From Lepidodermella squamata (Eukaryota > Animalia > Gastrotricha): a stretch of DNA of 64,000 nt. Of this stretch, positions 12,838-58,793 are shown one piece after another. The notes beneath the pieces are model-generated. The model saw nothing but the letters and a program-made list of their open reading frames with translations, was not told the DNA's origin and did not search any database. The stretch covers positions 1,302,001 through 1,366,000 of the forward strand of contig JBLDXI010000029.1 of assembly GCA_047495785.1 (NCBI GenBank), written 5' to 3'. Both the position numbers and the translations under genes were made by a program. Position 1 is the first letter of the stretch; each line of letters begins with the position of its first letter.

Positions 12838-13074
12838 TCAGACTTTCTTCTTGTTCGATATCGGTAAGCGTCCCATCCATCGGCCTCGTTGTTGGCCCTT
12901 GCTCAAAATTGTTGTTATGTCCATTTCGCCCGATGAACTCGACCTCGATTTGCTCTTCGTTCGCCTGATTTGATTAGCCAGCAGCCATCCTAAACGCTCA
13001 TCATCTTCCTCCGGATTCGCGAAAACAGAGCTGATAAACAAGGTTAAAACAAACGCCACAAATATCGGCTTCAT
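12838..13074 (-). CDS. Secreted peptide precursor 14 (WMGRLP)
   Basis: MKPIFVAFVLTLFISSVFA signal; QQRGRWMGRLP near the C-terminus. Confidence 0.85.
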   Translation of the reverse strand: MKPIFVAFVLTLFISSVFANPEEDDERLGWLLANQIRRTKSKSRSSSSGEMDITTILSKGQQRGRWMGRLPISNKKKV

Positions 13075-13345: not shown

Positions 13346-13645
13346 TCATGTAGACTTGATTGGCGGAGCTCGTCCAAACCAGGCTGCCTCTTGATTGTTG
13401 CCTCTCTGTTGCTGATGATTGTGTTGCTTCAACAGTTCTTCATAGACATTCATAAAACTCTGGCGTAAACTCGATCCATCACCTATAGCTCGTAATGAGT
13501 TGATAGCAACTATTCGCCTTTCGTTGTCTTCCGGAGTATTTTGATGTCGGGATAAGGCTTCGAGCCATAGCTTCTCGGGGTCTCGAACTATCCGTGCTGC
13601 TACCACGAGAATCAGCGAAGAGGCAATCGCAGTAACAAATAACAT
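13346..13645 (-). CDS. Secreted peptide precursor 15 (WFGRAP)
   Basis: Signal peptide; C-terminal AAWFGRAPPIKST. Confidence 0.85.
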   Translation of the reverse strand: MLFVTAIASSLILVVAARIVRDPEKLWLEALSRHQNTPEDNERRIVAINSLRAIGDGSSLRQSFMNVYEELLKQHNHQQQRGNNQEAAWFGRAPPIKST

Positions 13646-14930: not shown

Positions 14931-15455
14931 CTATTCGCCGATTTGACGATTTGAAGTGCCTTTTCGTTCCAGATAGTCGATCAAGGCACGGCGAAGTTGC
15001 CCATTTTTGCTAATGAGATGCTCAATTAATTGCTGCTCGGTCTCGCCCTTGACAGCTGTCTTAGCCAACTCAGACGAAGTTGATGATTGAGTTGCCGCTC
15101 CTGTTTTCATCGGAGAGCGCCCGAACCAACTCTCCGCAGCTGTCCTAGATGGCGCAGCGGGGGAATCCTTCACACTACGGCCTTTGAATTGATCTACAAC
15201 GTAATTCTTCATGCTTTGTCGAGGTTTCTGAAACCCCGAAGGAACTGCATTGATCCTGCCGCGGACTGCTGAGCTCTTCACAACAGAATTAGGGGTCGGA
15301 CTCTCGACAACAGGCTCGTAGCCGCTAGGGTCTTGCTTCGCCATGTCAGAGGTTCCGCGGTAGAACGCGCTAGATGGGGGCCACCGGCTTGCTACAGGGC
15401 GGCCTAAGCAAACGCTGAAAACTACAGCCGAAATTAAAACAGTTAAATTTTTCAT
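14931..15455 (-). CDS. Secreted peptide precursor 17 (WFGRSP)
   Basis: MKNLTVLISAVVFSVCLG signal; internal ESWFGRSPMK. Confidence 0.8.
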   Translation of the reverse strand: MKNLTVLISAVVFSVCLGRPVASRWPPSSAFYRGTSDMAKQDPSGYEPVVESPTPNSVVKSSAVRGRINAVPSGFQKPRQSMKNYVVDQFKGRSVKDSPAAPSRTAAESWFGRSPMKTGAATQSSTSSELAKTAVKGETEQQLIEHLISKNGQLRRALIDYLERKGTSNRQIGE

Positions 15456-15611
15456 TTTAAATTGCATAAAAATGAGCGTGCATCAATTTTTGTCGTCGGT
15501 GATAAAAGAACCGGAATTCCCCTAAGGCTATTCGTAGGTGTTAAAAGCTTCGTCACAACTTTTTTATTTTTAATAACAAATAACAGAATTAAAAAAAATA
15601 CAGAACAAAAT

Positions 15612-19425: not shown

Positions 19426-19776
19426 TCAATATTCTGGCTTTGGCATGAACCCTCGGAAAAATTGTGCTGGAGATCGAGGAGCTGGAGTGGTAATATCTCG
19501 GCTGAATTCTCGAGCCCTTTGCCGCTCTTCTCGCAATTGCATCTTCTTCAGCTTTCTTATCAGCCGATTCTGCTGTTTTCGAGAATTCTCCGGCTCGTCC
19601 TCTTGCACCTCGGAGTCGTCGTTTGCAGCGAACGCAGACGCAGCGGTCTTCCGATCTTTCGGGCTTCCAGTGTCGTCCAGTTTTACATCTGTCTTGGCTG
19701 CTATGACTTCCTCGGAAGAAACTGTCAGTGCTGAACATACCAGGAAGGCTGCAAGAAGTACCTGCGGCGCAAGCAT
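19426..19776 (-). CDS. Secreted peptide precursor 23 (PAQFFR family)
   Basis: Signal peptide; basic helix; PRSPAQFFRGFMP; TATATAAA on the minus strand at 19842-19835. Confidence 0.85.
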   Translation of the reverse strand: MLAPQVLLAAFLVCSALTVSSEEVIAAKTDVKLDDTGSPKDRKTAASAFAANDDSEVQEDEPENSRKQQNRLIRKLKKMQLREERQRAREFSRDITTPAPRSPAQFFRGFMPKPEY

Positions 19777-20234: not shown

Positions 20235-20597
20235 TCAGTTTCCATCGTTGCGATGAATGAAGCTACGGAAAAACTGAGCCGGTGATCGTGGAGATGGACT
20301 CAAGTCTTTCACGGTACGGTATTTGTTCCGCCTTCGCTCCTCGCGCTCCTTCTGCCTCTGTAGCTTCCTCATTTGCTTCTTAGAGCTAATCAAATTTCCA
20401 ACCTCCGATTGCGCGTCCAGCTCGTCGAGAATCGCCGTTAGTTCGGGCGAGACACCGTTCCATAGCGTAGCACGATCGGTCTCTTCTGGATCATTTTCAA
20501 GGAAAATGAGATCACCAGCGTAAGTATCCGGATCTTCAGCTACTGCCATGTAGCCAACCAATACTGCAAAAGTAATAGCGACGAAAAGAATTTGCAT
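20235..20597 (-). CDS. Secreted peptide precursor 24 (PAQFFR family)
   Basis: Signal peptide; basic helix; PRSPAQFFRSFIH, clearly paralogous to 23. Confidence 0.85.
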   Translation of the reverse strand: MQILFVAITFAVLVGYMAVAEDPDTYAGDLIFLENDPEETDRATLWNGVSPELTAILDELDAQSEVGNLISSKKQMRKLQRQKEREERRRNKYRTVKDLSPSPRSPAQFFRSFIHRNDGN

Positions 20598-21956
20598 AAC
20601 TCAGAACTCCTGTAAAGGCAGCTAATTAATTTCGACCTAGCATGAACCAAAATTATATAATTCGAAAATGTATGTTTGCAAAAAAATCGAATATCGTTTT
20701 CAGAGCGGACGTACGAATTGATGCTGGATGGTTAAAAGCTTAACTCGCAACATGTTACTATTCAGGTATCGTATAAACTAGCGAAGGCAACTTTGATGAT
20801 AGAGTGAATTACGTATGAGATTTCTAGATTTTATAGTGCAACCATGGCACCAATTTATTTTTAGGCCTTTGCAGCCACACGTGAACTATTGTTATGGGCT
20901 TAATGCTTATTACGTTTGCAGGTCGGGGAGCAAGGAGCAACTCTGAAACTTAAATTATGCTGCTTCATGCGGGGGTCCAATCAAAGTGAGCCGTAATATT
21001 GTTGGATTAAAAAGTTAGGACATAGTATTAGATCACGAGGCTGAAACGAAAAAGGGCTATGTTACTACAGCTGGACGCCTTTGGGGTGTTTTGATCGTAT
21101 AGGAAGCCCCCGAAATATATGATTCAACGGAGTACGTGGGAAGCACGCCGTAAAAAAAAAGACAACTGGAAATAAAGGATAATAAGAAGGAAAAAGAAGA
21201 AGAATCATGTTAAACAGAAAACCTGGCGAAGAGGATTTTGAAATCTAAATCATTCCCAATTTTCAATTAGATGAATGGTTTTAATTTTTGAAAATAAATG
21301 ATGCAGAATTGTTACTCGATCGGAAATTTTACTAATATAATGCATACAACGTGGATTCTCCAACTGTGTGGGTGGATGAGAGTCCTTCATCGCTTGCCTT
21401 CGGCCACTTCAACAAACGGACGCGGTCTAGACGCTTGTCGGGCTGACTAAAACTACTATCACTATTATTATTATTAGGAATTTAGAGGCTTAAAGAGATA
21501 AATGTCTCCAAATCAGCGACTTCTGAAATACTTAAAAAGAGTGTCAACATCTAATAATAGAAGCTTTGATTTTATTAAGGCACTGAAGGAGTACTTTATT
21601 CCCGTGATGCCCCCTGGCGAAATGCGTAGTAGTTGTATCCAGGCTTTGCTCAATTCCGTAGTTTGGCAAATAACAATAAATTCCGTGAGCATCCGCTGAA
21701 TAGTCACTATATCAATAACAAACTTCAAATACGTAGGACGTAGGATGAGTAAACTTTTATCACTCCTACCTCATGGACTCCTATTACTCCGCACAGGAGC
21801 GGTTCAAAATTCATCGTCTTAACCTGGATTACTCAAATTACCCAGAGACAAAACCGTTCTCACATTTAATTTAATTTATTAACATCGATAAATTATGCAT
21901 TGAAATAATTTGTTAAGATGCATCATAAGCAGTGACTCCTCTACCTATTTCCGTGT

Positions 21957-24725: not shown

Positions 24726-24904
24726 AACCTCAAAACTTCATTTCGCAGTCATAATGAGCTTTCAATTAATAAATTTGAAGATTAACAGCATGGCTTCGTT
24801 TTTTAAAGACTTTTTAGCAGGACATAAGCAGGACACGCCCCCTGAATAGCAGTAGTATAAATTTCCCACCTTTCATCAACAGCTCTTACAAACTTTCCTC
24901 GAAT

Positions 24905-25141
24905 ATGATTCAAATAAGATTTTTACTCTTGTTGATTTCCTTTCTCGCCGTAATCGCCTACTCGCGAACGGAACTGTTGTCACGCGCAGACGATTCTAGT
25001 CACGACTTTGCTATGCGAAAGCGATTTGGAGCGTTTGGACACTTCAACAAAGGCAGCAAGTTTGCTATCATTGCAGACATCATGAACGATCAACATCAAT
25101 ACGATCACAATGAAGATGAAACGCACCATCTGGAAGATTGA
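24905..25141 (+). CDS. Secreted peptide precursor 26 (GAFG family)
   Basis: Signal peptide; RKR-FGAFGHFNKG; His/Asp-rich tail; TATAAA at 24856. Confidence 0.9.
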   Translation: MIQIRFLLLLISFLAVIAYSRTELLSRADDSSHDFAMRKRFGAFGHFNKGSKFAIIADIMNDQHQYDHNEDETHHLED

Positions 25142-25373
25142 CTTTAGTACCGAGAAAACATTCCTGAAATAGAGTGCATTAGCCATTATTGCAACTTTGA
25201 ATCATGGAATTTCGCCAATTTTTAATCAAGGGGATTGATGACTAATAAATGGGAGAAAGCACCTACGATGGTACCACGCTTTGTGCTTAAAAGGAGTCGC
25301 AGTTCTCTTGAAGGGCACAATTTTCGAATCAAACCTCTTTTTCAGCCAGTTCCTTAGACAGGATAAGCGCATA

Positions 25374-25631
25374 ATGTCGATAACTCGATTTTCCGTTATT
25401 TTCGCAATTTGTCTGGCTCTTTTGATTGCCGTCATTAACGCAGAGCTGTTATCCCGTATTGACGAGTCAAACGACAATGGGAATCGTGTTTACGAAGATT
25501 TCTACGCCATGAAAAAGCGAGCTGGGGCGTTCGGGCATTTCGGCCATGGTAGCAGGTTCGTGTTCAATGTTGGCGGTGACAATCATGGCGATCACCATAT
25601 GGAGTCAGAAACCCACCATGTTTTCGAATAG
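25374..25631 (+). CDS. Secreted peptide precursor 27 (GAFG family, paralog of 26)
   Basis: Signal peptide; ELLSR; KKR-AGAFGHFGHG; tail ETHH shared with 26. Confidence 0.9.
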   Translation: MSITRFSVIFAICLALLIAVINAELLSRIDESNDNGNRVYEDFYAMKKRAGAFGHFGHGSRFVFNVGGDNHGDHHMESETHHVFE

Positions 25632-26248
25632 GTGTAATGAACCGACTATCATCTGCACGCTTTGTGAATTTTCATAAGTATTATTGTCATTTTTTTAATT
25701 GTCGCCAGATACTTGCGCAAGTTATCGCACTTCAATTTCAGTAAACGAGTAACAGTTCTCTTATTTATGTTTTGACCACAAGCAGGTGGAGGTATTTATT
25801 ATGAAGTTGGGAATAAAATGGTAGAATCAATTGAACTTAAAACACTTCAAGGCAGAATCATTAATCCAATTCTATTAACCAACTCAGCCTGGCAAAGTTT
25901 GAGCAAATCAATTACGGCCCTCGCAAAAAACCTCAGACAAAGTCATTCTGAATAGCGTGGAGGTAATAAATTATTTGTGAAGAGGTCCTGATATAGGGCT
26001 ATTTTATAAGGTGGCTGTGTCGAGGGCATAATGAAACTATGAACTCGATTCCTGACAGCGCATGATCGAATAGCTAGCCCCGAGCCATACTACGCGCTTC
26101 CTGAAATTCGATAAGCGATTCGTTCTACTTATCCTCTCTTAGGAGGAAGACAATTCTACAGTATATATAATATAAGGAATAACAAAAGTAAGTTGTTCAT
26201 TTTGTTGAAATTTCTTCAAGCTGGTTATTTTGCTTTTCGTTCAGAAAT

Positions 26249-26515
26249 ATGGAGTTTTCACACTCGAAACTTTTCGTAACAATGTTGATCCTAGCAGCAC
26301 TGGTCGCTGCCTCTCACTCTGCGGCTATCATTGACGACGAAGCATTTCTCGCTAGCAAACGTTTTGCTTTCGGCCATTTCGGAAAGGCTGGCGTTTCGCC
26401 ACTGGTCAACACCGAGGGCGGTGGATTCATGCAGACGATGCAGCGCGGCCTTGATAATTCAGCGGAATTCAACGAGATCGAAGATGAAGACGAAAATAGG
26501 CATTTAGTCAACTGA
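26249..26515 (+). CDS. Secreted peptide precursor 28 (GAFG family)
   Basis: Signal peptide; KR-FAFGHFGKAG; acidic tail. Confidence 0.9.
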   Translation: MEFSHSKLFVTMLILAALVAASHSAAIIDDEAFLASKRFAFGHFGKAGVSPLVNTEGGGFMQTMQRGLDNSAEFNEIEDEDENRHLVN

Positions 26516-27629
26516 TATCTTGATTTGAAGCAAATGCGAAGATGTTCTCAAAATAAAATACTTACCGTTGTAATACATGTTTTGGTTGACGCAAATTTAC
26601 GGTATAATTCACTCGAGTGGGATCGGAGCAAATGAATTAATCAAATGGCTGAATTAATAGCTGGTAGCTATTACTGATATTGCATTAATTATTTGTGGCA
26701 TATGCTGAAACATGTGCGACCAAATTTCCAGCTATGAAGTTGCGATACCTCTGCTTCTCGAGGGCTCCGTTCATTATTAAACCAGTGGGCGATGCGAATT
26801 GCAAAACCTGTCAACAACAATACTTGGTGTCATCCACATGTTCATTGATCAGCAATATCCGAAATGTTGTTTTTTTGCAATGCGGAAATTACGGATACAG
26901 ATGTTTTTTGCTCTTTGCTCTGAAACTCCAAAAACCGACATTTTTCGATTAAAGCATACAGTGACAACTTCGATTAGATACTCGATATAATGAGACACAG
27001 AACTTAGCAGGGAATTCTTGTCGGCGGATGACAGATTTTCCCTCGTGAGTCCTAAAAATGGGACAACTCGATTAGATGCATAGGAAACTGTCTGCCAATC
27101 TCCTAGATTTCTTGGTAACTCGGAACTCACCAAGGGCTGCCATGATGCAGCATCGTAAGGTGGATTTGTCTGAGATTAATGCCCTTAAATGCGACTGTGT
27201 GTTTACAGGAGCGGAAGGAGGGTGCGATGCAGAATTTTATCGGCGCCTTAGTGCAATTGCCACTTGAGGTCGCTTTGTAGGGCCTAACATTTCCGCTACG
27301 CACATGAACATCACAAACATTGCCAGATTCCTGGCTGTTGTAGCCGCCCATACGCGAAAAATTCGCTGCAGCGGATGCGCGACGCAAAAAAGAATTAGCG
27401 TGGTTTTAAGTGATTACTTAAGGCCGAAGACACAACGCAGAGTAGCATTTTAATTGTTATAACACCACGCGCTATTCAATTTCGCTTCCGTTTTGATTCA
27501 TCGCGAAGGCGCTCGACACGACACGATCACCCTACGCCTTTTTTTGCGAAAATTTGTTATTATTGCCATTGTATTTCTACTCTTAACTATAAAGTATAGA
27601 ATTTTACATCTGCCTTCACTTTACACATT

Positions 27630-28037
27630 ATGGCTGTAACTAAGTCGACCTGGTTATTGAGCTTAGCAGTTCTGGCAGTCGTTTTGGTTGCGTATGCAAC
27701 TGCTGAGGAGGATGCACCCGATTGGCCCTTGTTCGCTTTCAAGAGGAGCATCGCCGCTTTCAGCCGTCATGCAACGAAAAACAGCCGTGTGAGACCAGAA
27801 TCGGCCAGACGCCCATCAGGCCGCAATAACGGAATTTACAATAGATTAAAGACCAGCCCGTTCGAAGACGAGGATGACGATGAAGAAGAAGAATTTGATG
27901 GGCCAATGAAACGAGAGGCTTTCTTCGACCTGTACTCCGGTGGCTTAGTCGACGACGCAGCAGCTCAGTTTGAGGCGACTAGACAACAAGGCCAGGCTCG
28001 CAAGTTCGGCATCGGCAACGCTCGTGTTCTCGGCTGA
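27630..28037 (+). CDS. Secreted peptide precursor 29
   Basis: Signal peptide; KR-SIAAFS, KR-EAFFDLY and RK-FGIGNARVLG (terminal Gly, possible amide); TATAAA at 27588. Confidence 0.85.
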   Translation: MAVTKSTWLLSLAVLAVVLVAYATAEEDAPDWPLFAFKRSIAAFSRHATKNSRVRPESARRPSGRNNGIYNRLKTSPFEDEDDDEEEEFDGPMKREAFFDLYSGGLVDDAAAQFEATRQQGQARKFGIGNARVLG

Positions 28038-28599
28038 GGCGATCCTGACAGTGAATTGCGTGTTTTAATCTCAGTTTATGATTTCGCATTTAGCATAGTA
28101 TTTTCTTCAACGTCAACTTCTGCGAGGAATAGCGTGTTCTTTGACAGATATCACGGCAGCTTATTAAAATCAGTTAAAATAAAAATGTGGATGATCAATA
28201 TTGCGATTTGTTTCTCCAGGTGATCACTTTGAATGATTAATTTGGCCGAAATGCACTTTTAGACGGATGAAATCACTAAAATTTAAATATAGACGGTCGG
28301 TGGAAGGTGAGAGGCGTTATCAAAATACCATGAATTTTTAATTACCCAGTCATTTTAATTCACACAAACAAGCTGCCGAAGTCTTGAAGCGCGATGTGTC
28401 AGCACTCCAAAATATATCTATCATCCGTGCGAATCCTGTCATCGATGAAGCACGCGTTTTAATAGGGGTCAAATTGATCATCGATGCGGAAGGAAATTCG
28501 AATTTCTAGACCCCGTAAAATGTATATCGTAGGATTATTCACACATTAATTGATTTACGCTTTTAACGGTAGATATTTTTGTCGAGAAATATTATCAAC

Positions 28600-28833
28600 A
28601 TGCCAACCTGGAGAATGGCTTTCGTCGCTGTCGCTCTGCTCGCCTTTGTCTTTACATTGCCAACTGAAGCTTCACCTCTGGCGTTTTTGGACAACGTTGA
28701 GAATGCTGAGGATGCTGTTCCGATATTCGAAACCAAGCGAGTTGGTGCTTTCGGAACTTTTGGGATCAATCATCATCGGAACATGGAGAATGAGACTCCA
28801 AACCTGGAAGACGATGATGTAGAATTCTACTGA
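28600..28833 (+). CDS. Secreted peptide precursor 30 (GAFG family)
   Basis: Signal peptide; KR-VGAFGTFG; acidic tail. Confidence 0.9.
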   Translation: MPTWRMAFVAVALLAFVFTLPTEASPLAFLDNVENAEDAVPIFETKRVGAFGTFGINHHRNMENETPNLEDDDVEFY

Positions 28834-28950
28834 GCAAACAAACGGGGCCTAGTCAACCATGTCGAATTTGTATATCTATAGTGTCTGCTCAAATTCCATG
28901 GACGACATGAAAAACTTCAAATAATATTCTTGTAATCTCATCGCACTATA

Positions 28951-29186
28951 GGAAAAGGTATAGCTTTTTAGCTCGACGCCTATCGAAATGCTCTTGCTAA
29001 TAATCTTTTATTCCCATGCCCTTATTCAGCTATTTTTAGCTATTCAGCCATTTTGTGTTAAATCCTTTGATATTAAATCAATATGAATCATCGTTAAATA
29101 GCTAAAACAACTAAATAATGGTACGGAAAATAGAATATCAGCATGAGCATTTTGACGAAATCTAGCTAAAAAGCAAGATTTTTTCC
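28951..29186. mobile_element. MITE/foldback-like imperfect inverted repeat
   Basis: Left arm ggaaaa..gctttttagct..aaatgctc..tagctatt (about 28951-29045) mirrored at about 29096-29186. Confidence 0.55.
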
Positions 29187-29762
29187 TTGCGGGTATTTAG
29201 CGCTAGGCCGAATGACATTTACATCGCTGACTAAAAAAGCCTCTAAAAAAGCGACATCGTATGATCAATAATTATTTTCTCGAGATATTTTATAAATATT
29301 TTGAAATAAATTTTTAATTTCTGTGAATGCGTCTTTTCCAGTCAATTTCCTATCAGCTGATTTACATCAGTAGTAACATTCCTGGGCATGCCACGAATGC
29401 CGTATAGATCATGTGATCTTTTAATCCGTTTATCGCAGCGAAAGCTGGTTATTGAAGAGGAAAATAGGCCTTGGGCTGGTGGATAAAAAATCAGATTCGT
29501 CCTTACAGCATAATTATACGGGGTATATTGCTCCCACAATCGTGTTGATGTAAGCCTAGCTCACTACTCATTAGGCCGATGTAGCCCATGCCTTGCCGCT
29601 CAGAACACAATATCACATTTCTGTGTGGTCTTCAGATGTCACTTCATTAGAGTAAAAATTACTCTGCGATAAGGATAGGACAAATTAGTCATTTTCAAAT
29701 ATTTACGTTGAATCACTCGCAATTTGATATTGAACCTTCTTTTTAGGCCTTGTATGAAGAAA

Positions 29763-30017
29763 ATGGCGAATGGTTACATTGGGTTTGCGGTAACTTTCCT
29801 ACTTGCATCTTGCATCCTGGCAGTGAGCTATAGCGAGCCGTTATTCAAACGGAGCGGCGCTTTCGGAAATTTCGATAAAGTTTACTTTGATCGCCAGGCG
29901 CCGTCACGACTCGCCGGAATCAACACTGGGCTGAGTAGGGGCGCGAGCAGCAACTTCCTGTGGCAAGATCAACCTTTCTCTAACGATATCACCGACTACG
30001 AGGAAGCGAGCGCTTAA
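29763..30017 (+). CDS. Secreted peptide precursor 31 (GAFG family)
   Basis: Signal peptide; FKR-SGAFGNFD. Confidence 0.9.
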   Translation: MANGYIGFAVTFLLASCILAVSYSEPLFKRSGAFGNFDKVYFDRQAPSRLAGINTGLSRGASSNFLWQDQPFSNDITDYEEASA

Positions 30018-30288
30018 TATTAAAATCACATGAAAACACATGTTTATTATCGTCATTGTAAGCTCTGTCAAGTGTCTCTTTCTTCAATGAAGCTAATGGC
30101 TTATGAAATAAACGGTAGTCTTCGTCAAATTTGCGTCATTCAGAAACCTTTCATTGACAATTTTTCCCAATAATCTGATAATTTATTTATATCCAATATC
30201 GAGATTTACGAGATTTACGACTTTGAATCTCGTTAAAATAGCTTGCGGCTTTCACACCCACTTTATTTGAGACTTTTTTCGAGTTCAC

Positions 30289-30558
30289 ATGGAGTTCAAA
30301 ACAATAGCCATCTCTGCAATGATATGTGTCGTCCTGGTTACGGCCGATCAATCGCCAGCAGCTAATTTAGCTGATTACGGTGACAAATTTTCATTTCTGC
30401 GAAACGAACTAGCAATGGCGGGGGTTAAGCGCCGCAAACGGCCCTTTGGAGCGTTCGGTAATTTCGGAATCGCTGGCATGGGAACAATTTCGTCTCTTGG
30501 CAATGAAGACATAGCGCAGAACTTCGACCACGATTCACACGGCAGCGAGCAGGAGTGA
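30289..30558 (+). CDS. Secreted peptide precursor 32 (GAFG family)
   Basis: Signal peptide; KRRKR-PFGAFGNFG; AATAAA at 30626. Confidence 0.9.
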   Translation: MEFKTIAISAMICVVLVTADQSPAANLADYGDKFSFLRNELAMAGVKRRKRPFGAFGNFGIAGMGTISSLGNEDIAQNFDHDSHGSEQE

Positions 30559-30679
30559 AAAGTTGAACATTTGGGAATTAACTCTAATTAACGTAATTTC
30601 CCCGTGAATTCACTACAAATTTCGTAATAAAATCATTCAATTGTTTTTCAATTACCCAGTATTTTTCCTCATTAATAAA

Positions 30680-30964
30680 ATGTCAAAAATAATCATTTTT
30701 GTTGGGTTAACCGCTTTTCTCCTTCAGCTTGCGATTTCGAATGCAACTCCGGCGAAGAGATATGCGTCTTTGAATAATCTCATCAGCAAACCCCGCTACG
30801 GCCCCGGCTTGTTTGAACAGCCCGAACATTCGCCGTACTACGAAACTCCAGAAGAAGGGAATGATCACGACCACGAGCCTGAAGTCGCACGACGCTCCGG
30901 CCGGCGCCCACCATCCATGGGCCGCCAGAGCATGAGCTTGAATGGGGAACATTCTGGAAAATAA
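30680..30964 (+). CDS. Secreted peptide precursor 33
   Basis: MSKIIIFVGLTAFLLQLAISNA signal; KR-YASL; RR sites; terminal GK. Confidence 0.85.
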   Translation: MSKIIIFVGLTAFLLQLAISNATPAKRYASLNNLISKPRYGPGLFEQPEHSPYYETPEEGNDHDHEPEVARRSGRRPPSMGRQSMSLNGEHSGK

Positions 30965-31242
30965 GGAATACTGGCCCTATTCGAGAAAGACATTCATATA
31001 TAAGAACTCGGTGGTAGTGTGTATAATTCGCATTCCATAATTGCGTTGTTTTATTTCGAATAAAAAAGCATTCGATTTTTATCAGGTGGTGTATTTGCCA
31101 ATTTAATTCCTGTTTACCCTGCACGCTCCGTGTGCCTCGTTCCCGATGAGTGGGTGCTTGTATTTCTAGCAAATATAGGACCAGGACCATTTTTCAAATT
31201 TCACTTGTTAGAAATTTTAGGTTTTTATAGCTACCGCAGACA

Positions 31243-31491
31243 ATGTCGAGAAATCTGTTGGCCTTCGGAATTTTCGCTATTTTGGTCATCATGCTGATCA
31301 ATGTTGATAACAGTGAAGCTTCAGCTGTTGTCCTATCAAAACAACGCCAGCGTATGAAGCAGGTAGCTAGCAAGCGTGACTTCAACGGCAGAAGCAATCG
31401 CCATTTCCTCGAACTGGCTAAGTTCCTCCGCCCGTCAAGTGGTGTCGATACACAGGAAGAGGAGGAGGAGGACGCACTCGAGGATAAATGA
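31243..31491 (+). CDS. Secreted peptide precursor 34
   Basis: Signal peptide; KR-DFNGR; poly-Glu tail. Confidence 0.85.
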   Translation: MSRNLLAFGIFAILVIMLINVDNSEASAVVLSKQRQRMKQVASKRDFNGRSNRHFLELAKFLRPSSGVDTQEEEEEDALEDK

Positions 31492-31669
31492 TATCAACCT
31501 ATTGATCCGACTCAATGAGATAACTATTGATTTACAATGATAATCCCGATGCTTTTGTTTTGTGACTCATAATAATACCCCGTGACCGTATCGGCTTATT
31601 TGTCAATAAAGCCCGCGATGAAAATTTAATTAAAGAATTATGCTCGTCTCCCACCGCGTAGCAATCGCA

Positions 31670-31870
31670 GTTATGAGATTGATTTCTGGCAAGATTTGTT
31701 GTTTTGCGAATTTCGCTTTATAGCCATAGCTGTGGATGGATGGCAGGCCACAAATCATCGCCCAGAAGTATGAGATTGATATCTGGCTGAATTAGTTTGT
31801 TTTTGCGAATTTTCTTTCAGCCATATGCCGTGGATGGCTGAGGGCCACAAATCATTATTCATTGCCCAGA
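31670..31870. repeat. Two-copy imperfect tandem repeat of about 100 bp
   Basis: tatgagattgat.tctggc...ttttgcgaattt...agccata..gtggatgg..ggccacaaatcat..gcccagaa occurs twice head to tail. Confidence 0.8.
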
Positions 31871-32124
31871 ATTTTCATGGGCCTTTTTTTAGCATAATTG
31901 CCGACAAAATGCCAATTTAACGACCTCTACGCAAAACAAATCTCACCGCCCTTGAGTAAATATATGCGCATATCGATTCTCCATTAGGTGTCATTCAACA
32001 TTGCGCAGGCGTGTGGTTTGTTAGTCATTTGTTCACTTTGTCTGATTGGTTTCCGCCAAGACGTTTACAGGCTCCCTCTCAATTATCTCAATTTTCTTCT
32101 CTTAGACTTTTGAATTTTGAAATA

Positions 32125-32367
32125 ATGTTCTCCGGGTCCAAGCAACTTATCGTCTGTCTTGCGATAATCATCGTAATGGCGAGCTGCGTTCTTCATTCGA
32201 GCAATGCAATGCCTGGCCAGATTGTGGAGGTCTTCAAGCGATCAGCGGCTTTCGGCAACTTCGGGCGAGCTGGGCTCAAGCACTTTCAAGCGCGAGAGTT
32301 CATGCCGAGCGACATTGATTCAAATGATGAGCAGCTAGATGAAGACACCCAAGTGGATTATGAATAA
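32125..32367 (+). CDS. Secreted peptide precursor 35 (GAFG family)
   Basis: Signal peptide; FKR-SAAFGNFGR; acidic tail. Confidence 0.9.
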   Translation: MFSGSKQLIVCLAIIIVMASCVLHSSNAMPGQIVEVFKRSAAFGNFGRAGLKHFQAREFMPSDIDSNDEQLDEDTQVDYE

Positions 32368-32611
32368 TTAAGCCCTTTTTCGAGGCATATTTTCATGTTT
32401 CGCTAAATAAAAGCTGGACTTGCACTTTTGATAACCCGTCGTACTTGATATTCATCGGAGATTTCTGGCTTGTCAAAAAAGACGAGTAAAACTGACTCAG
32501 ACACCTCCCTGAGGGGCAGAGTGCGTGTACCATCGCTGAGATAATTACACAGACACACCATTATCTCAACTTTAAAGGCAAGGATCTTTTTGCTTTTTCA
32601 GTATATGATAT

Positions 32612-32830
32612 ATGATGGCGTTCACTAGCTTTCGAACGCTTCTGCTTGCGATCTTTGCTGTTTTTATGTTGGTTGCTATGGATGCTGTTTCGGCTATCCC
32701 GCGCTGGAAGCCCAGCGAGATGGGAGATCTGTTCGTCAAGCGAATGGGCTCGTTCGGGCGATTTGGCTTTAAAGGCGGATTTGTGGACCCGGAAGATGCT
32801 TCACAAGGCCACGCCTCGCATGAAGACTAA
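32612..32830 (+). CDS. Secreted peptide precursor 36 (GAFG family)
   Basis: Signal peptide; KR-MGSFGRFG. Confidence 0.9.
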   Translation: MMAFTSFRTLLLAIFAVFMLVAMDAVSAIPRWKPSEMGDLFVKRMGSFGRFGFKGGFVDPEDASQGHASHED

Positions 32831-36855: not shown

Positions 36856-37485
36856 ATGGCAGATACGACTACAATTTTCGCAACATTTTTGCTTGCAGGA
36901 TGTTTAGCTTGCTTCACAGAAGGCTTAGGAAATTTCGGTAACATGGGCTTTGTTGGGGCTAGTAAGCTTCGCCAACAAGACATTGTTATGGACGATAATA
37001 TAGTCGATGCTGGTGATTACGAATTCGTGGAGAAGCGAAACGGCCTCGGGCGTTTCAAAGGAGGTTACGGCGCCTCGGCTGTCAAGGTCAAACAGCCGCG
37101 ATCTCGTCGTCATGCCGATGAGGAAGAACACGAACACCTCACCTCAGTGTCAACGAAGCGTAGCGGCCTCGGTCGGTTGAAGGGCGGCTACGGCGTCACA
37201 GCTGTCAAAGTTCGCAAAACTCGCTCACTTGAAAAGCGAGCTAAAGCTGGCAAGGGAGCGTATGGCGTCTCAATGCTGAAGCCAACGAGTTCGAAACGAG
37301 CCCGGTCTGGCAAGGGGGCATATAGTGTCGTCGTGAATAGACCCTACGACAAACGAGGAAAGGCCGAGCAAAAGGACATCATTGCTGATTACGCCGATTT
37401 TTTTCTTCGAAAACGTCGAAGCATTGACTTAGGAACGAAACAAGGCGGTAACTTCATGATTGGCGATGTCTTCCAGGCTTACTAA
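36856..37485 (+). CDS. Multi-copy prohormone-like precursor 40 (KG[GA]Y repeats)
   Basis: Signal peptide; at least 6 KR sites; repeats NGLGRFKGGYG, SGLGRLKGGYG, AKAGKGAYG, ARSGKGAYS. Confidence 0.9.
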   Translation: MADTTTIFATFLLAGCLACFTEGLGNFGNMGFVGASKLRQQDIVMDDNIVDAGDYEFVEKRNGLGRFKGGYGASAVKVKQPRSRRHADEEEHEHLTSVSTKRSGLGRLKGGYGVTAVKVRKTRSLEKRAKAGKGAYGVSMLKPTSSKRARSGKGAYSVVVNRPYDKRGKAEQKDIIADYADFFLRKRRSIDLGTKQGGNFMIGDVFQAY

Positions 37486-40351: not shown

Positions 40352-40693
40352 ATGAGCTCGAAGTTTCTGCCTTTGGCTGTCGCCGCTGTTGTCTGTCTCG
40401 TCATAATCCAAACAACTTCGGCTTCTGATCAGCTGCTGAACCGACAGAGACGTGGCTTCGGCGCTGTGACATGGCGTGGCCGTATGGGTATGGGCGGCCT
40501 GGCGCCGGCGAACAAAAAAGCCGTGCTAATCGCTATTCCGCTTGAAGAAAGCGAATCGCAATCTTACGATGCGTTGGCGGAAGCGCGGAAACGCGGTCTC
40601 GCTGGGTTCAGCTTCGGCCGCTCGGGCCGCATGGGAGTTGGATCGCTCGGGCGCAATCGGCCTGTCATCCAAACAATCGTCGACGACAATTAA
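40352..40693 (+). CDS. Secreted peptide precursor 42 (two GRMGxGxL peptides)
   Basis: Signal peptide; RQRR-GFGAVTWRGRMGMGGL and RKR-GLAGFSFGRSGRMGVGSL. Confidence 0.9.
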   Translation: MSSKFLPLAVAAVVCLVIIQTTSASDQLLNRQRRGFGAVTWRGRMGMGGLAPANKKAVLIAIPLEESESQSYDALAEARKRGLAGFSFGRSGRMGVGSLGRNRPVIQTIVDDN

Positions 40694-43250: not shown

Positions 43251-45097
43251 CTAGTTTCTCGGGGTAAAAATGAGTCTAACCGGGTCTCTTGGAGTCATAA
43301 CAATGGCAACTTTAACATGGATTCGGCCAATATTAGTCTCATCAGCCGGGAGAGATATTTTGTATCTTTTTAAGATGTTAACTATCACATATTTCATTTC
43401 AAGTAAGGAAAACAGTTTGCCGATGCATTGATGCGGGCCAATGCCAAAGCTGAGAAACGCTGAACGCGTGAAACCGGCTGGTTGGTTTTCTGGCAGAAAT
43501 CGTTCCGGCCAAAACTGGTCCGTATGTGCTCCCCAATGCTCTGGATTTTGGTGCACAGACCAAACGTTGACTAAGACTTTTGTCACGTCTTTCGTTACTG
43601 GAACGTTGCAAATGTTTGCGTCTTCGGTTACCAGCCGATTAACAGCGTTGATTGCGACCGGATATAGGCGCAAAAGTTCGTAACAGACACAATCCAAGTA
43701 AACCAATTTAGTCATCAATGTGTCGTAATCAATTGTATTTTGCGATTGCCAGGTTGCTTTTGAAATTTCATCAGCTAATTTTTCCTGATTAAAAACACAC
43801 AGTTTTTTGAAGGGCGTGTTCACATGTAACCAACCTGAACTTCGGGATGGCGCGCTAGGACTGCGCACAAAAATGAAAGTGATATACTTGTTGTTTCGTA
43901 GCCAGACAGGAAAAACATGACAAGTTGCACTTTCAACTCTTGCTCACTCATATAACGTTCCGGATGGAAATTAGCCGCAATTGGGCATGTGATGTCGTGC
44001 GATGTTTTTCCCGGGCTCCGATCTCGCGAGCTGCTACGTGTCCTGCTGCGAATGTCGGGGTTTACATCTTTCCTGGATCTTTGCGTCGATTCGAAATTTG
44101 TCACGTTTATTAGCAGTTTCAGAAGATCAGGGCTGGTTTTTCCTTTCATCGGGCAACTTGCCTCCGACTTACGTTCGTGCTCGATTGCGTCAGTCATTAA
44201 CTTGAAGAAGCACATGAATGGGCTCAAAGGCCCTGCTGAGTATTTCATCACAAAATGCAGCACAAACTGAGAAAAGCTGAATTATGTACTGATGTGAGAA
44301 AATTGAAAGACAAACCTTCATAACAGGGATTATTTCGGGTAGAATCGTTACGACTTTGAATGCAAATGGTGTGTCAGCCAGGCAATTTGACATCATTTCT
44401 GTAGCTTTCTCGAAAACATCGTTGGGGATTTGATTATCCTCGTTAGCGTCCAGTAGCCGGAGTTTGAGACCGAAGGCTGCCTCGCCCAAGGAATCCATCG
44501 CATATCTTTCAAAAGGCTCACTCACATGCAAAGGCGTGCCCTTTGACCTCTCAATGATGGCAAGAAGGTCATTGATTCGAGATTCGAAAAATGGTAGCAC
44601 TGATCGCATTTTCGTTGAGCTAAAAAACTTGCTAGCTGTTAGACGAGGCCTTCGCCATCGATCGCCCTTCGCGATCATCATATTGATAAGGGGATGGTCT
44701 GGTTCTTTATCAGAATCTGGCTGAACTGGGGCAGCCTATAATTCAAGTTTCAGCTAAAGCCTAATAAACTAGATGATTTACCAACCATTCTACCGGTGAA
44801 AACGTTTGATTGCTTGATACAAACGTTTTCAATCCCAGCCGCACTTGAAACTACTAGGACCGGCCTTGAACCTTCGAAATAGCCAAATGTTTCGCCGTAC
44901 TTCTTCGACCATTCATGAATGACGATATGGCTATCTGGGACCCAGAGTTGAAGCATGTTGCCGAACAAGAAATGCGGCTCTGGGCCTGGGATTCCCAACT
45001 TTGAGAAATAGCGGTGGCAGAAGAACTTTCGATAAAAGTAGAAAATAGCGAGCAGAACAATTGCAGCCAGACATGTGATAATTAGAATATAGACCAT
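43251..45097 (-). CDS. Cytochrome P450, CYP3-clan-like (4 exons)
   Basis: N-terminal TM helix plus GIPGP; WxxxR; I-helix FFLSGYETT; ELLR; PERF; heme motif FGIGPHQCIG. Confidence 0.92.
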
Positions 45098-56261: not shown

Positions 56262-56786
56262 TTAATGACTGCCGCCGAGGGTTTCCTTGTCGAACATGTA
56301 CTCGCCAAGGCCAGGGCCGACGCGCTTCAGGATAGCAACATAGTCCGAGAACTGCTTGATCGAATCGACCTGTTCCTTGAGGTACTCACCCTCCAGGAAA
56401 TCGCACATTTGCACGTCGTTGTGACGCGTGGCAACTGCGTGTAAGTCCAACAGCGACTGGTTGACCTTCTTCTCGAGGGCCAGGGCAGTTTCCATCGCAT
56501 TCAAACCACTGCCCCATTCGTCCTGTTCCGGCTTGGCAATCGGCTGGAGAACAACACGGCCGCCTCGCTTGTTCTGGTATTTCATCAATTTCTCGGCATG
56601 TTCGTGCTCTTCGTCGCTCTGCTTCTTGAAGAAAGCGTGGAAGCCAGGCAGGGCGATGTCGTCGCGGTCGAAGTGGAAGGCCATCGACAAGTAAACGTAC
56701 GAGGCGTGCAGCTCCATGTTGATCTGGCGGTTGATGCCAGCCTCAGACTCGGCGTTGTAATTTTGACGGGGCAGCGTAACAGACAT
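56262..56786 (-). CDS. Ferritin, H-type (intronless)
   Basis: Full-length ferritin: [45 protein letters not shown]; ferroxidase residues present. Confidence 0.97.
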
Positions 56787-57323: not shown

Positions 57324-58793
57324 ATGTCGCAAACGACTTTGCCACGCCAGAATTTCCACCAAGAATCCGAAGCGGCCATCAATCGCCAAATCAACCTCGA
57401 ACTTTACGCCTCGTATGTCTACATGTCGATGGCGAATCATTTCGACCGCGATGACGTTGCGTAAGTTGCCGTTATTTTGTTAACATTCCCCCAAAATTTC
57501 CCCCTATGGGCGCGATTTTTCGAATTTGGTTTCTAATGAGCTGGAAAATAGCGTTGAAAAAACCGAAAATAGATACCCAACTTCATAGATTTTCTAGCGA
57601 GAATTACTGGAATGAAAATCTGCTTCATAATGAAAGAATCAGAGTCAAGGAAAGAGAGAAATGGGTGGAAGAGAGTTGAAGAATTTCGATAATTATAATA
57701 AAATTATCAATACCTATCCACGTAAAAGATTTTGTATTTTAAAATCGGCAATAATTTCTATGAATTTTCCCTGCGATTTGAAAAATGCAGGGCTAGCTGG
57801 ATTAACCCATCTATCGTTAAGCTATCTGTAGAATTTGAATTAAATTTATCTGCTAGCGGAAGCAAAATGCCCCTCGCGGAACTTAACTCGAAATGTTCCA
57901 AAATCCAAAAGTCATTCTTGAATAATTTTAAAAATTTCTGGCGAAGCATGAGTTGTGGATTGAACCCTCTGTCTTATAGGGAATGTTACGCTGAATTTAC
58001 TGGTGAATTTTTCTAATTATTTTGGTCACTCTTGACCCATAATAAAGTTCCGAATTTCGGGCCAATAGAAAATTCCAAAATTTGGTTCCGCCACGGCAAA
58101 TTATGTTACGCTTACCGTAAACTTGGATCCGCTAAAAGGAGGACCCAATTGAATTTAATAAAATGTTCAAATTCTCCATAAAATCGAGGGTCCCAGTGAG
58201 TCAGAGTACAGAAGTGGAATGTCACGAAACCGAGTTGAAAGTTGAAAAATCCCTAGAAAAACCTGAAGTGAAAATTCAACTTCAAGTTTTGAAGTTGACT
58301 TCAAAACTTTCACTTCAAAATCTTCGTTTTTATAACAAGAATGAATATTCCACATGTCTCACATTTTTAAGACGATTTCTGAAGTTAAAATTGGTTATTT
58401 TTTTCTAGTCTGCCCGGATTCAGCAACTTTTTCAAGAAAATGTCCGACGAAGAGCGCGAACACGCCGAGTTGTTGATGAAGTACCAGAACAAGCGCGGCG
58501 GCCGTGTTGTCCTGCAGCCCGTGCCGAAGCCGGAGAAGGACGAGTGGGGAAGCGGCCTGAACGCCATTGAAACGGCGCTGACGCTCGAGAAGAACGTCAA
58601 CCAATCACTGCTGGAGCTGCACGCGGTCGGCGATCGCCACAACGACGTGCAGATGTGCGACTTTTTGGAGGGCGAATTCTTGAAGGAACAGGTCGACTCG
58701 ATCAAGCAACTGTCGGACTACGTCGCCATTCTGAAGCGCGTCGGCCCTGGCCTTGGCGAGTACATGTTCGACAAGGAGACGCTGTCTGCTTGA
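57324..58793 (+). CDS. Ferritin, H-type (2 exons: 57324-57460, 58409-58793)
   Basis: Exon 1 [33 protein letters not shown]...DDV; phase-2 GT-AG intron 57461-58408; exon 2 LPGFSNFF...EEREHAE...DKETLSA*. Confidence 0.95.

Follow-up and report, generated by a model that had tools for sequence, protein, structure and literature searches.

A tandem family of putative secreted precursors with a GAFGxFG motif directly after Lys-Arg in the gastrotrich Lepidodermella squamata

In opioid precursors the mature N-terminus, right after Lys-Arg, is a short invariant motif, YGGF, and the C-terminal extensions behind it vary; these precursors are known from vertebrates, and each contains many peptides bounded by dibasic sites at either end. 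Amphibian skin antimicrobial precursors (brevinin/dermaseptin) consist of a signal peptide, an acidic pro-piece, Lys-Arg and a Gly/Phe-rich mature N-terminus, and are encoded by tandem, fast-evolving gene families. Their mature products form amphipathic, cationic helices, frequently bearing a Cys “Rana box”, and conservation is in the pre-pro region; in the frog peptide brevinin-2-RN1 the mature sequence starts with GAFGNF. Orcokinins and the nematode NLP-14/15 peptides are non-amidated and acidic with a motif of the type G-F-x-x-F-(D/N), which in orcokinins is C-terminal, accompanied by a conserved NFDEIDR-like N-terminus, and present in multiple copies between dibasic sites. Short Gly/Phe strings also occur in the LARKS (kinked segments, rich in aromatics and of low complexity) listed in the literature, among them GFGNFGTS of Nup98 and NFGAFS of TDP-43, which adopt kinked-beta structures. 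Here, a 64,000-nucleotide stretch of the genome of the gastrotrich Lepidodermella squamata (contig JBLDXI010000029.1, positions 1,302,001 to 1,366,000, hereafter the window; GC content ∼42%) was analyzed, in which eight neighboring genes at positions 24905–32830 encode putative secreted precursors with a GAFGxFG motif directly after Lys-Arg.

By analogy, this family would work most like the N-terminal-message peptides, following the logic of opioid YGGF, although it has no sequence similarity to the opioids and encodes one peptide per gene, with no C-terminal site and with an acidic tail. In contrast to the frog peptides, its predicted products are anionic and cysteine-free, and it is the mature head that is conserved. 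The strings FGNFG and FGAFG resemble LARKS and FG segments locally; however, LARKS are intracellular, occur many times per low-complexity domain and are not proteolytically released, whereas the window family has a single copy per protein, is predicted to be secreted and bears an acidic tail. The non-amidated, acidic character and the G-F-x-x-F-(D/N) type motif are common to orcokinins, NLP-14/15 and the window family, yet no link to these peptides was found in word-index and profile searches.

The GAFGxFG family, its transcription and the constraint on its motif

The open reading frame (ORF) listing of the window contained eight complete, single-exon ORFs of 72–89 amino acids (aa) on the + strand, each encoding, in the same order, a signal-peptide-like hydrophobic stretch, a pro-piece, Lys-Arg, a Gly/Phe head and an acidic tail. 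A heuristic reading found a hydrophobic core in all eight, with small residues at positions -1 and -3 of a plausible signal-peptide cut site. The pro-piece ranged from 6 to 32 residues and was mostly acidic in composition. The consensus directly after Lys-Arg was x-(G/A)-(A/S)-F-G-x-F-(G/N/D), often extended as FG-x-(A/P/G)-G, and the tails had no cysteine, were acidic at the end and often contained His or Tyr.

Member 1 (24905..25141; 78 aa) had a pro-piece ending in RKR, the head FGAFGHFN and a His/acidic tail, and matched the family profile with an E-value of 2e-26. AGAFGHFG followed KKR in member 2 (25374..25631; 85 aa), and FAFGHFGKAG followed KR in member 3 (26249..26515; 88 aa). Member 4 (28600..28833; 77 aa) had VGAFGTFG after KR and a tail ending in DDDVEFY, while member 5 (29754..30017; 87 aa), with a pro-piece of only ∼6 residues, had SGAFGNFD after KR. 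In member 6 (30289..30558; 89 aa) RRKR was followed by PFGAFGNFGIAG, with no basic residues at all after the cleavage site. Member 7 (32125..32367; 80 aa), in which KR preceded SAAFGNFGRAG, was the nearest to a gene of a related animal (40% identity; see below), and member 8 (32612..32830; 72 aa) had KR followed by MGSFGRFGFKGGF.

All eight post-dibasic strings had been listed in a first-pass annotation of this DNA, and each was recovered in place and on the + strand. The same annotation held that everything else in the precursors diverges, which was overstated: Lys-Arg was invariant throughout the eight paralogs and the relative's two genes, with variable residues around it, the FG-x-(A/P/G)-G extension recurred, members 1–4 had a second small motif, E-(T/N)-x-x-(L/V), near the C-terminus, and members 1 and 2 were 46% identical, pro-piece included. 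The pattern [KR]R-x(1-3)-[AS]FGxF[GND] had eight matches in the six-frame translation of the window, compared with 0.04 on average, and never more than 1, when the window was simulated 100 times by a first-order Markov model. The family profile recovered the eight members with E-values from 1e-15 to 2e-26, the next-best ORF in the window having an E-value of 0.002. These results support a real family of genes defined by the motif directly after the dibasic site.

Transcription was assessed from contigs of three public runs (X1, X2, and X3) placed on positions 24800–30700, i.e., on members 1–6. Contigs of X1, probably the genome from which the window derives, covered the whole compared stretch, while those of X2 and X3 covered gene bodies, with most intergenic bins at or near zero depth. 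Run X2 carried an organism label other than that of the window, yet was 95–99% identical to it, as for a sister strain or species. Member 1 lay under X2 contigs resembling complementary DNA (cDNA), member 2 under an X2 contig over 25371–25585, and member 4 under X2 contigs over 28665–28906 and 28938–29257; X2 depth over member 5 was low but non-zero. An X3 contig over member 3 (26245–26573) terminated in a stretch of poly(A) lying 58 nt past the stop codon. Member 6 was covered by an X3 contig over 30301–30592 and by an unspliced X2 contig (30128–30599), which at 30128 abutted cDNA-adapter-like sequence; the orientation of the latter was not textbook, and it was taken only as a cDNA end. AATAAA was present ∼20 nt upstream of both poly(A) sites observed (26573, and 28198 behind another gene of the array), and a TATA-like run lay ∼30–45 nt ahead of the start of an X2 contig at 26207 (member 3). 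By their gene-body coverage, poly(A) runs and adapter-like end, the contigs of X2 and X3 thus have the character of cDNA, and members 1–6 are real genes, each its own transcription unit. No common promoter motif was found upstream of the family genes.

Sequences resembling splice acceptors, with a polypyrimidine stretch and CAG or TAG, were observed at 26242–26248 and just before the ATGs at 25374, 29754, 32125, and 32612, and the X3 contig starting at 26245 began exactly after a CAG. The X2 contig starting at 26207 was preceded by 30 unaligned letters, for which a 30-nt cDNA adapter is equally possible as a spliced leader.

No nucleotide similarity was detectable between the paralogs, and their motif codons varied at synonymous sites (GGA/GGG/GGC/GGT, TTT/TTC, GCG/GCT, and CGA/CGT/CGG). 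The motif has therefore been kept at the amino-acid level, and not via recent gene conversion. Among the coding differences listed between the window and runs X2 and X3, 15 of 23 were synonymous, as were all four of those listed inside the motif (25526 and 25529 in member 2; 28752 and 28758 in member 4). Member 4 had three listed coding differences, two of which fell in the motif, and each of the three was synonymous. These data show purifying selection on the motif and the Lys-Arg.

A diverged relative and searches for known families

An exhaustive profile search of 1.84 billion representative proteins gave two matches, P0122 and P0121. The first, of 71 aa, had the exact family layout, with a signal peptide, a pro-piece, KR followed by SGAFGNFGRPG, and a tail ending in EYIYEY. 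The second, a bacterial beta-helix protein of 2858 aa, was rejected and taken as a compositional match. The P0122 gene was located on two metagenome contigs, L001 and L002, which were 99.3% identical to each other, and a second paralog 0.7 kb downstream of it had KKR followed by SGAFGVMGQAG and a tail ending in QYIYEYE. A profile built from the window genes only picked both genes among 741 ORFs, with E-values of 2.5e-10 and 2e-7. KR-SGAFGNFGR was common to member 7, in the form SAAFGNFGR, and the L001 gene despite their 40% overall identity, and outside KR and the head the relative's genes were 22–40% identical to the window members.

The two loci could be anchored by a pair of ferritin genes. 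In the window these were back to back, one intronless (56262–56786, - strand) and the other with two exons (57324–57432 and 58411–58793, + strand), and the pair on L001 (2404–4158) had the same order and relative orientation, with the two family genes directly after it. The ferritins were 81% identical in amino acids and 73–78% in nucleotides, and among all ferritins in the database the L001 genes matched best. On L001, genes for Cys-loop receptors flanked the ferritin pair. Nothing else aligned between the two loci. A 700-aa gene beside the window ferritins was considered as a homolog of a 776-aa gene on L001 and was rejected; the synteny therefore consists of the ferritin pair and linkage only. 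The ferritin divergence, on a contig that also carries Cys-loop receptor genes, indicates that the relative is a clearly diverged animal. With two copies in the relative and eight in the window, the expansion is placed in the lineage of the window. Absence of the motif from orthologs had been named beforehand in the first-pass annotation as a result that would speak against the family; in the diverged relative, Lys-Arg and the head persist amid otherwise changed sequence.

Searches for a described family gave no named relative. A Pfam scan of all members returned nothing below an E-value of 0.1, and word-index searches of 5.8 billion proteins with two alignments returned only the relative's own gene, P0124. 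The top score in a feature search of the ESM Atlas was 0.80, below significance, and neither member 4 nor member 6 was on record in public assemblies when looked up by exact sequence. Strict back-translation of KRSGAFGNFG gave 0 matches in the metagenome DNA of the Joint Genome Institute (JGI), while a looser DNA pattern gave at least 120 loci there, and those listed were all in a bacterial or chance context and without a signal peptide. Literature searches with the motif strings gave only the frog brevinin-2-RN1, and no catalog of gastrotrich peptides was found in the literature. There was no mention of such genes in the L. squamata genome paper (PMC11660948). The expectation that the family would not be identical with a known one was thus borne out by the Pfam, word-index, profile and literature searches alike, and to judge from them the GAFGxFG peptides are a real, undescribed family. 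They were filed as a new family of secreted pro-peptides with a dibasic processing site, belonging neither to the opioid type nor to the frog antimicrobial precursors and having no sequence relationship to either.

That the ORFs are not genes, and that the motif is a repeat or a chance artefact, would fit their small size and the lack of database relatives, and nothing more. It is contradicted by cDNA coverage with poly(A), the synonymous excess, eight motif matches against 0.04 expected and conservation in another species, which together make this explanation extremely improbable.

Predicted products and possible functions

Cleavage after Lys-Arg would yield cysteine-free products of 28–54 residues, with a predicted net charge of -1 to -7 and an isoelectric point of 4.2–5.9. 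The N-terminal half of the predicted product is neutral to slightly basic and rich in Gly, Phe and Ala, while the C-terminal half is strongly acidic. AlphaFold, run with the family alignment, predicted structure only for the signal-peptide helix (residues 3–26, confident), the rest having predicted local distance difference test (pLDDT) values of 51–55, and this fits a mature part that is a peptide without a fold, not a structured domain. FG-K/R monobasic contexts were present in three of ten sequences (members 3 and 7, and L001a, of the relative) and could be sites of monobasic cleavage and amidation; the conserved (A/P)-G behind FG-K/R argues for a functional unit longer than an octapeptide. 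Tyr in an acidic context was read in six of the ten tails, a possible lead for Tyr sulfation.

Tentatively, these genes are interpreted as a lineage-restricted, tandemly expanded precursor family in which a Gly/Phe head freed by a convertase is the acting part, most likely as a receptor “message”. Each single-exon polyadenylated mRNA would give a protein that enters the secretory pathway via its signal peptide, and an enzyme of the furin/prohormone-convertase type would cut it after the invariant Lys-Arg. The cut would free a disordered, anionic peptide with the new N-terminus x-G-A-F-G-x-F-G-x-(A/G)-G, whose head would be the functional determinant, most likely binding a receptor, while the fast-evolving acidic His/Tyr tail may serve as a variable address or as a charge-balancing, solubilizing part.

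The exact short sequence and the adjacent Lys-Arg were constant, while pro-piece length, tail length and tail sequence drifted freely. The message-plus-address arrangement suggested in the first-pass annotation fits this pattern of conservation. Receptor ligands typically conserve an exact short sequence, rather than charge or amphipathicity. Since antimicrobial peptides conserve charge or amphipathicity instead, the constraint on exact sequence ranks the ligand reading first. Multi-copy dibasic precursors nearby in the array (see below) support a peptide-precursor interpretation.

Several points weigh against a processed ligand. The precursors have no C-terminal processing site or amidation signal, unlike most neuropeptides: in all eight members the stretch from head to stop codon lacked dibasic sites, Lys-Arg being on the N-terminal side only, and none of the eight ended in Gly or Gly plus basic residues, as the first-pass annotation had rightly stated. 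The predicted products are long and strongly acidic, and one member has Pro directly after KR. Signal-peptide removal, cleavage at Lys-Arg and the ligand role are all inferred; the expression comparison covers members 1–6, with members 7 and 8 lying beyond 24800–30700, and the estimate of the ratio of nonsynonymous to synonymous substitution rates is partial, with 33 further differences beyond the 23 listed.

The Pro after KR and the absence of C-terminal processing sites would also suit proteins in which Lys-Arg is left uncut, as would the fact that the conserved block includes Lys-Arg itself. Disordered proteins of ∼5–8 kDa would then be secreted whole, with KR-GAFGxFG acting as an internal short linear motif for a partner such as a matrix or cuticle component, a carrier or a sorting receptor. 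However, the Lys-Arg is invariant, follows a hydrophobic residue at P3/P4 in a secretory protein, which is the standard convertase context, and is found near multi-copy dibasic precursors, and the pro-piece varies from 6 to 32 residues as a discarded part does. Secretion of the uncut protein is accordingly regarded as rather unlikely.

Amphibian antimicrobial precursors likewise run from a signal peptide through an acidic pro-piece and KR to a Gly/Phe-rich N-terminus, and the products of the window family might instead be secreted effectors, in which the Gly/Ala/Phe-rich N-terminus freed at KR inserts into membranes in defence or in the handling of prey or microbes. Frog-skin antimicrobial peptides and the cleavage-exposed fusion peptides of viral glycoproteins would be the models. 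The GAFGNF start of brevinin-2-RN1 agrees with such a role, as does the occurrence of the family as a tandemly expanded, fast-diverging array amid many small secreted genes, and a bombinin cluster appeared in the ESM Atlas feature search (score 0.75, below significance). Yet every predicted product is anionic and none has a cationic helix of amphipathic type, and AlphaFold predicted no helix in the mature part. Moreover, antimicrobial peptides usually keep the pre-pro region and vary the mature part, the reverse of what was seen here. An effector role is thus unlikely, although it is the foremost of the alternatives to a processed ligand.

The first-pass annotation had also proposed self-assembly triggered by cleavage in a secretion. 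In this reading a LARKS-like head, freed of its pro-piece, would build reversible fibrils or a gel by stacking, and the external secretion might be an adhesive, mucus or an egg coat. The likeness of FGNFG and FGAFG to the kinked-beta segments of Nup98 and TDP-43 holds, the products are predicted to be disordered and cysteine-free, and gastrotrichs secrete adhesives. Self-assembly is the weaker of the two proposals in that annotation: each protein has a single aromatic-glycine segment with no repeats, and the strongly acidic tail should oppose assembly and argues for solubility. In addition, the likeness is a string of 5–6 residues, and nothing pointed to high abundance or gland expression. Self-assembly therefore appears quite improbable.

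A more specific form, which is judged to be slightly more improbable still, would make the cut at Lys-Arg an activation switch exposing the LARKS-like N-terminus for reversible extracellular assembly, tuned through the acidic His/Tyr tail by pH or metal ions, so that the peptides would be what a gastrotrich secretion, such as mucus, an egg coat or a duo-gland adhesive, is made of. If true, a kinked-beta chemistry known until now from condensates inside cells would here be put to extracellular use and triggered by proteolysis.

The surrounding array of small secreted genes

Between positions 2901 and 40693 the window contained ∼40 single-exon ORFs with signal peptides, organized into three strand blocks (+, 2.9–8.0 kb; -, 8.0–20.6 kb; +, 24.9–40.7 kb). 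The GAFGxFG family is one coherent subset of this larger array of small secreted genes. Inside it, the gene at 27630..28037 (+ strand; 135 aa) encodes KR followed by SIAAFSRH, an acidic stretch and further dibasic sites. It is expressed, being covered by cDNA contigs, one of which, from X2, ends in the poly(A) run at 28198. Compared with the family it gave an hmmsearch E-value of 0.059 and an hhalign probability of 9%, and it is possibly a diverged member. A two-copy precursor at 40352–40693 (+ strand), with RR followed by GFGAVTWRGRMGMGGL and RKR followed by GLAGFSFGRSGRMGVGSLGRNRP, resembled the relative's second paralog (..GQAGVGMLRNP), and its link to the family was weak (hmmsearch E-value 0.002; hhalign probability 15%). 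Family membership of these two genes was not demonstrable by profile comparison.

The multi-copy precursor at 36856–37485 (+ strand; 209 aa) carries LGNFGNMGFVG directly after its signal peptide, and units with KR-NGLGRFKGGYG.. and KR-SGLGRLKGGYG.. between dibasic sites, with a His/acidic spacer. Its resemblance to the family lies in a conserved Gly/aromatic head (xGLGRxKGGYG) after KR and in its His/acidic spacers, and GR-F..KGG-(F/Y) is common to it and member 8. It differs in being multi-copy and in having a dibasic site at either end, and its homology to the family was not demonstrable when the ORFs of the window were searched with the family profile. Upstream of the family, an orphan stretch coding for AFGHFNK (21389..21409, + strand) matched the motif of member 1 at 18 of 21 nt, within an ORF of 36 codons that lacks both signal peptide and KR, and is a possible relic of a decayed family member.

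Other secreted neighbors had conserved parts of their own. The ORFs at 19426–19776 and 20235–20597 (both - strand) had a common C-terminal P-R-S-P-A-Q-F-F-R-(G/S)-F and differed in the remainder; they form another putative mini-family, this one conserved close to the C-terminus. Three secreted ORFs at 12838–13074, 13346–13645, and 14931–15467 (all - strand) had W-(F/M)-G-R-x-P in common near the C-terminus and are possibly a third. Outside the array, a spliced cytochrome P450-like gene with several exons (43251–45097, - strand) confirmed that the genome is an animal's and that its introns are short.

The secreted peptides of gastrotrichs are almost entirely undescribed. The GAFGxFG family offers a tractable entry, having a short, selectively constrained motif, an invariant processing site that can be tested by mass spectrometry, and, in another species, a counterpart linked by synteny. 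If its products are effectors or materials, they would show the role of part of the arrays of small secreted genes; if they are ligands, the family would represent a new invertebrate signaling family with an N-terminal message.

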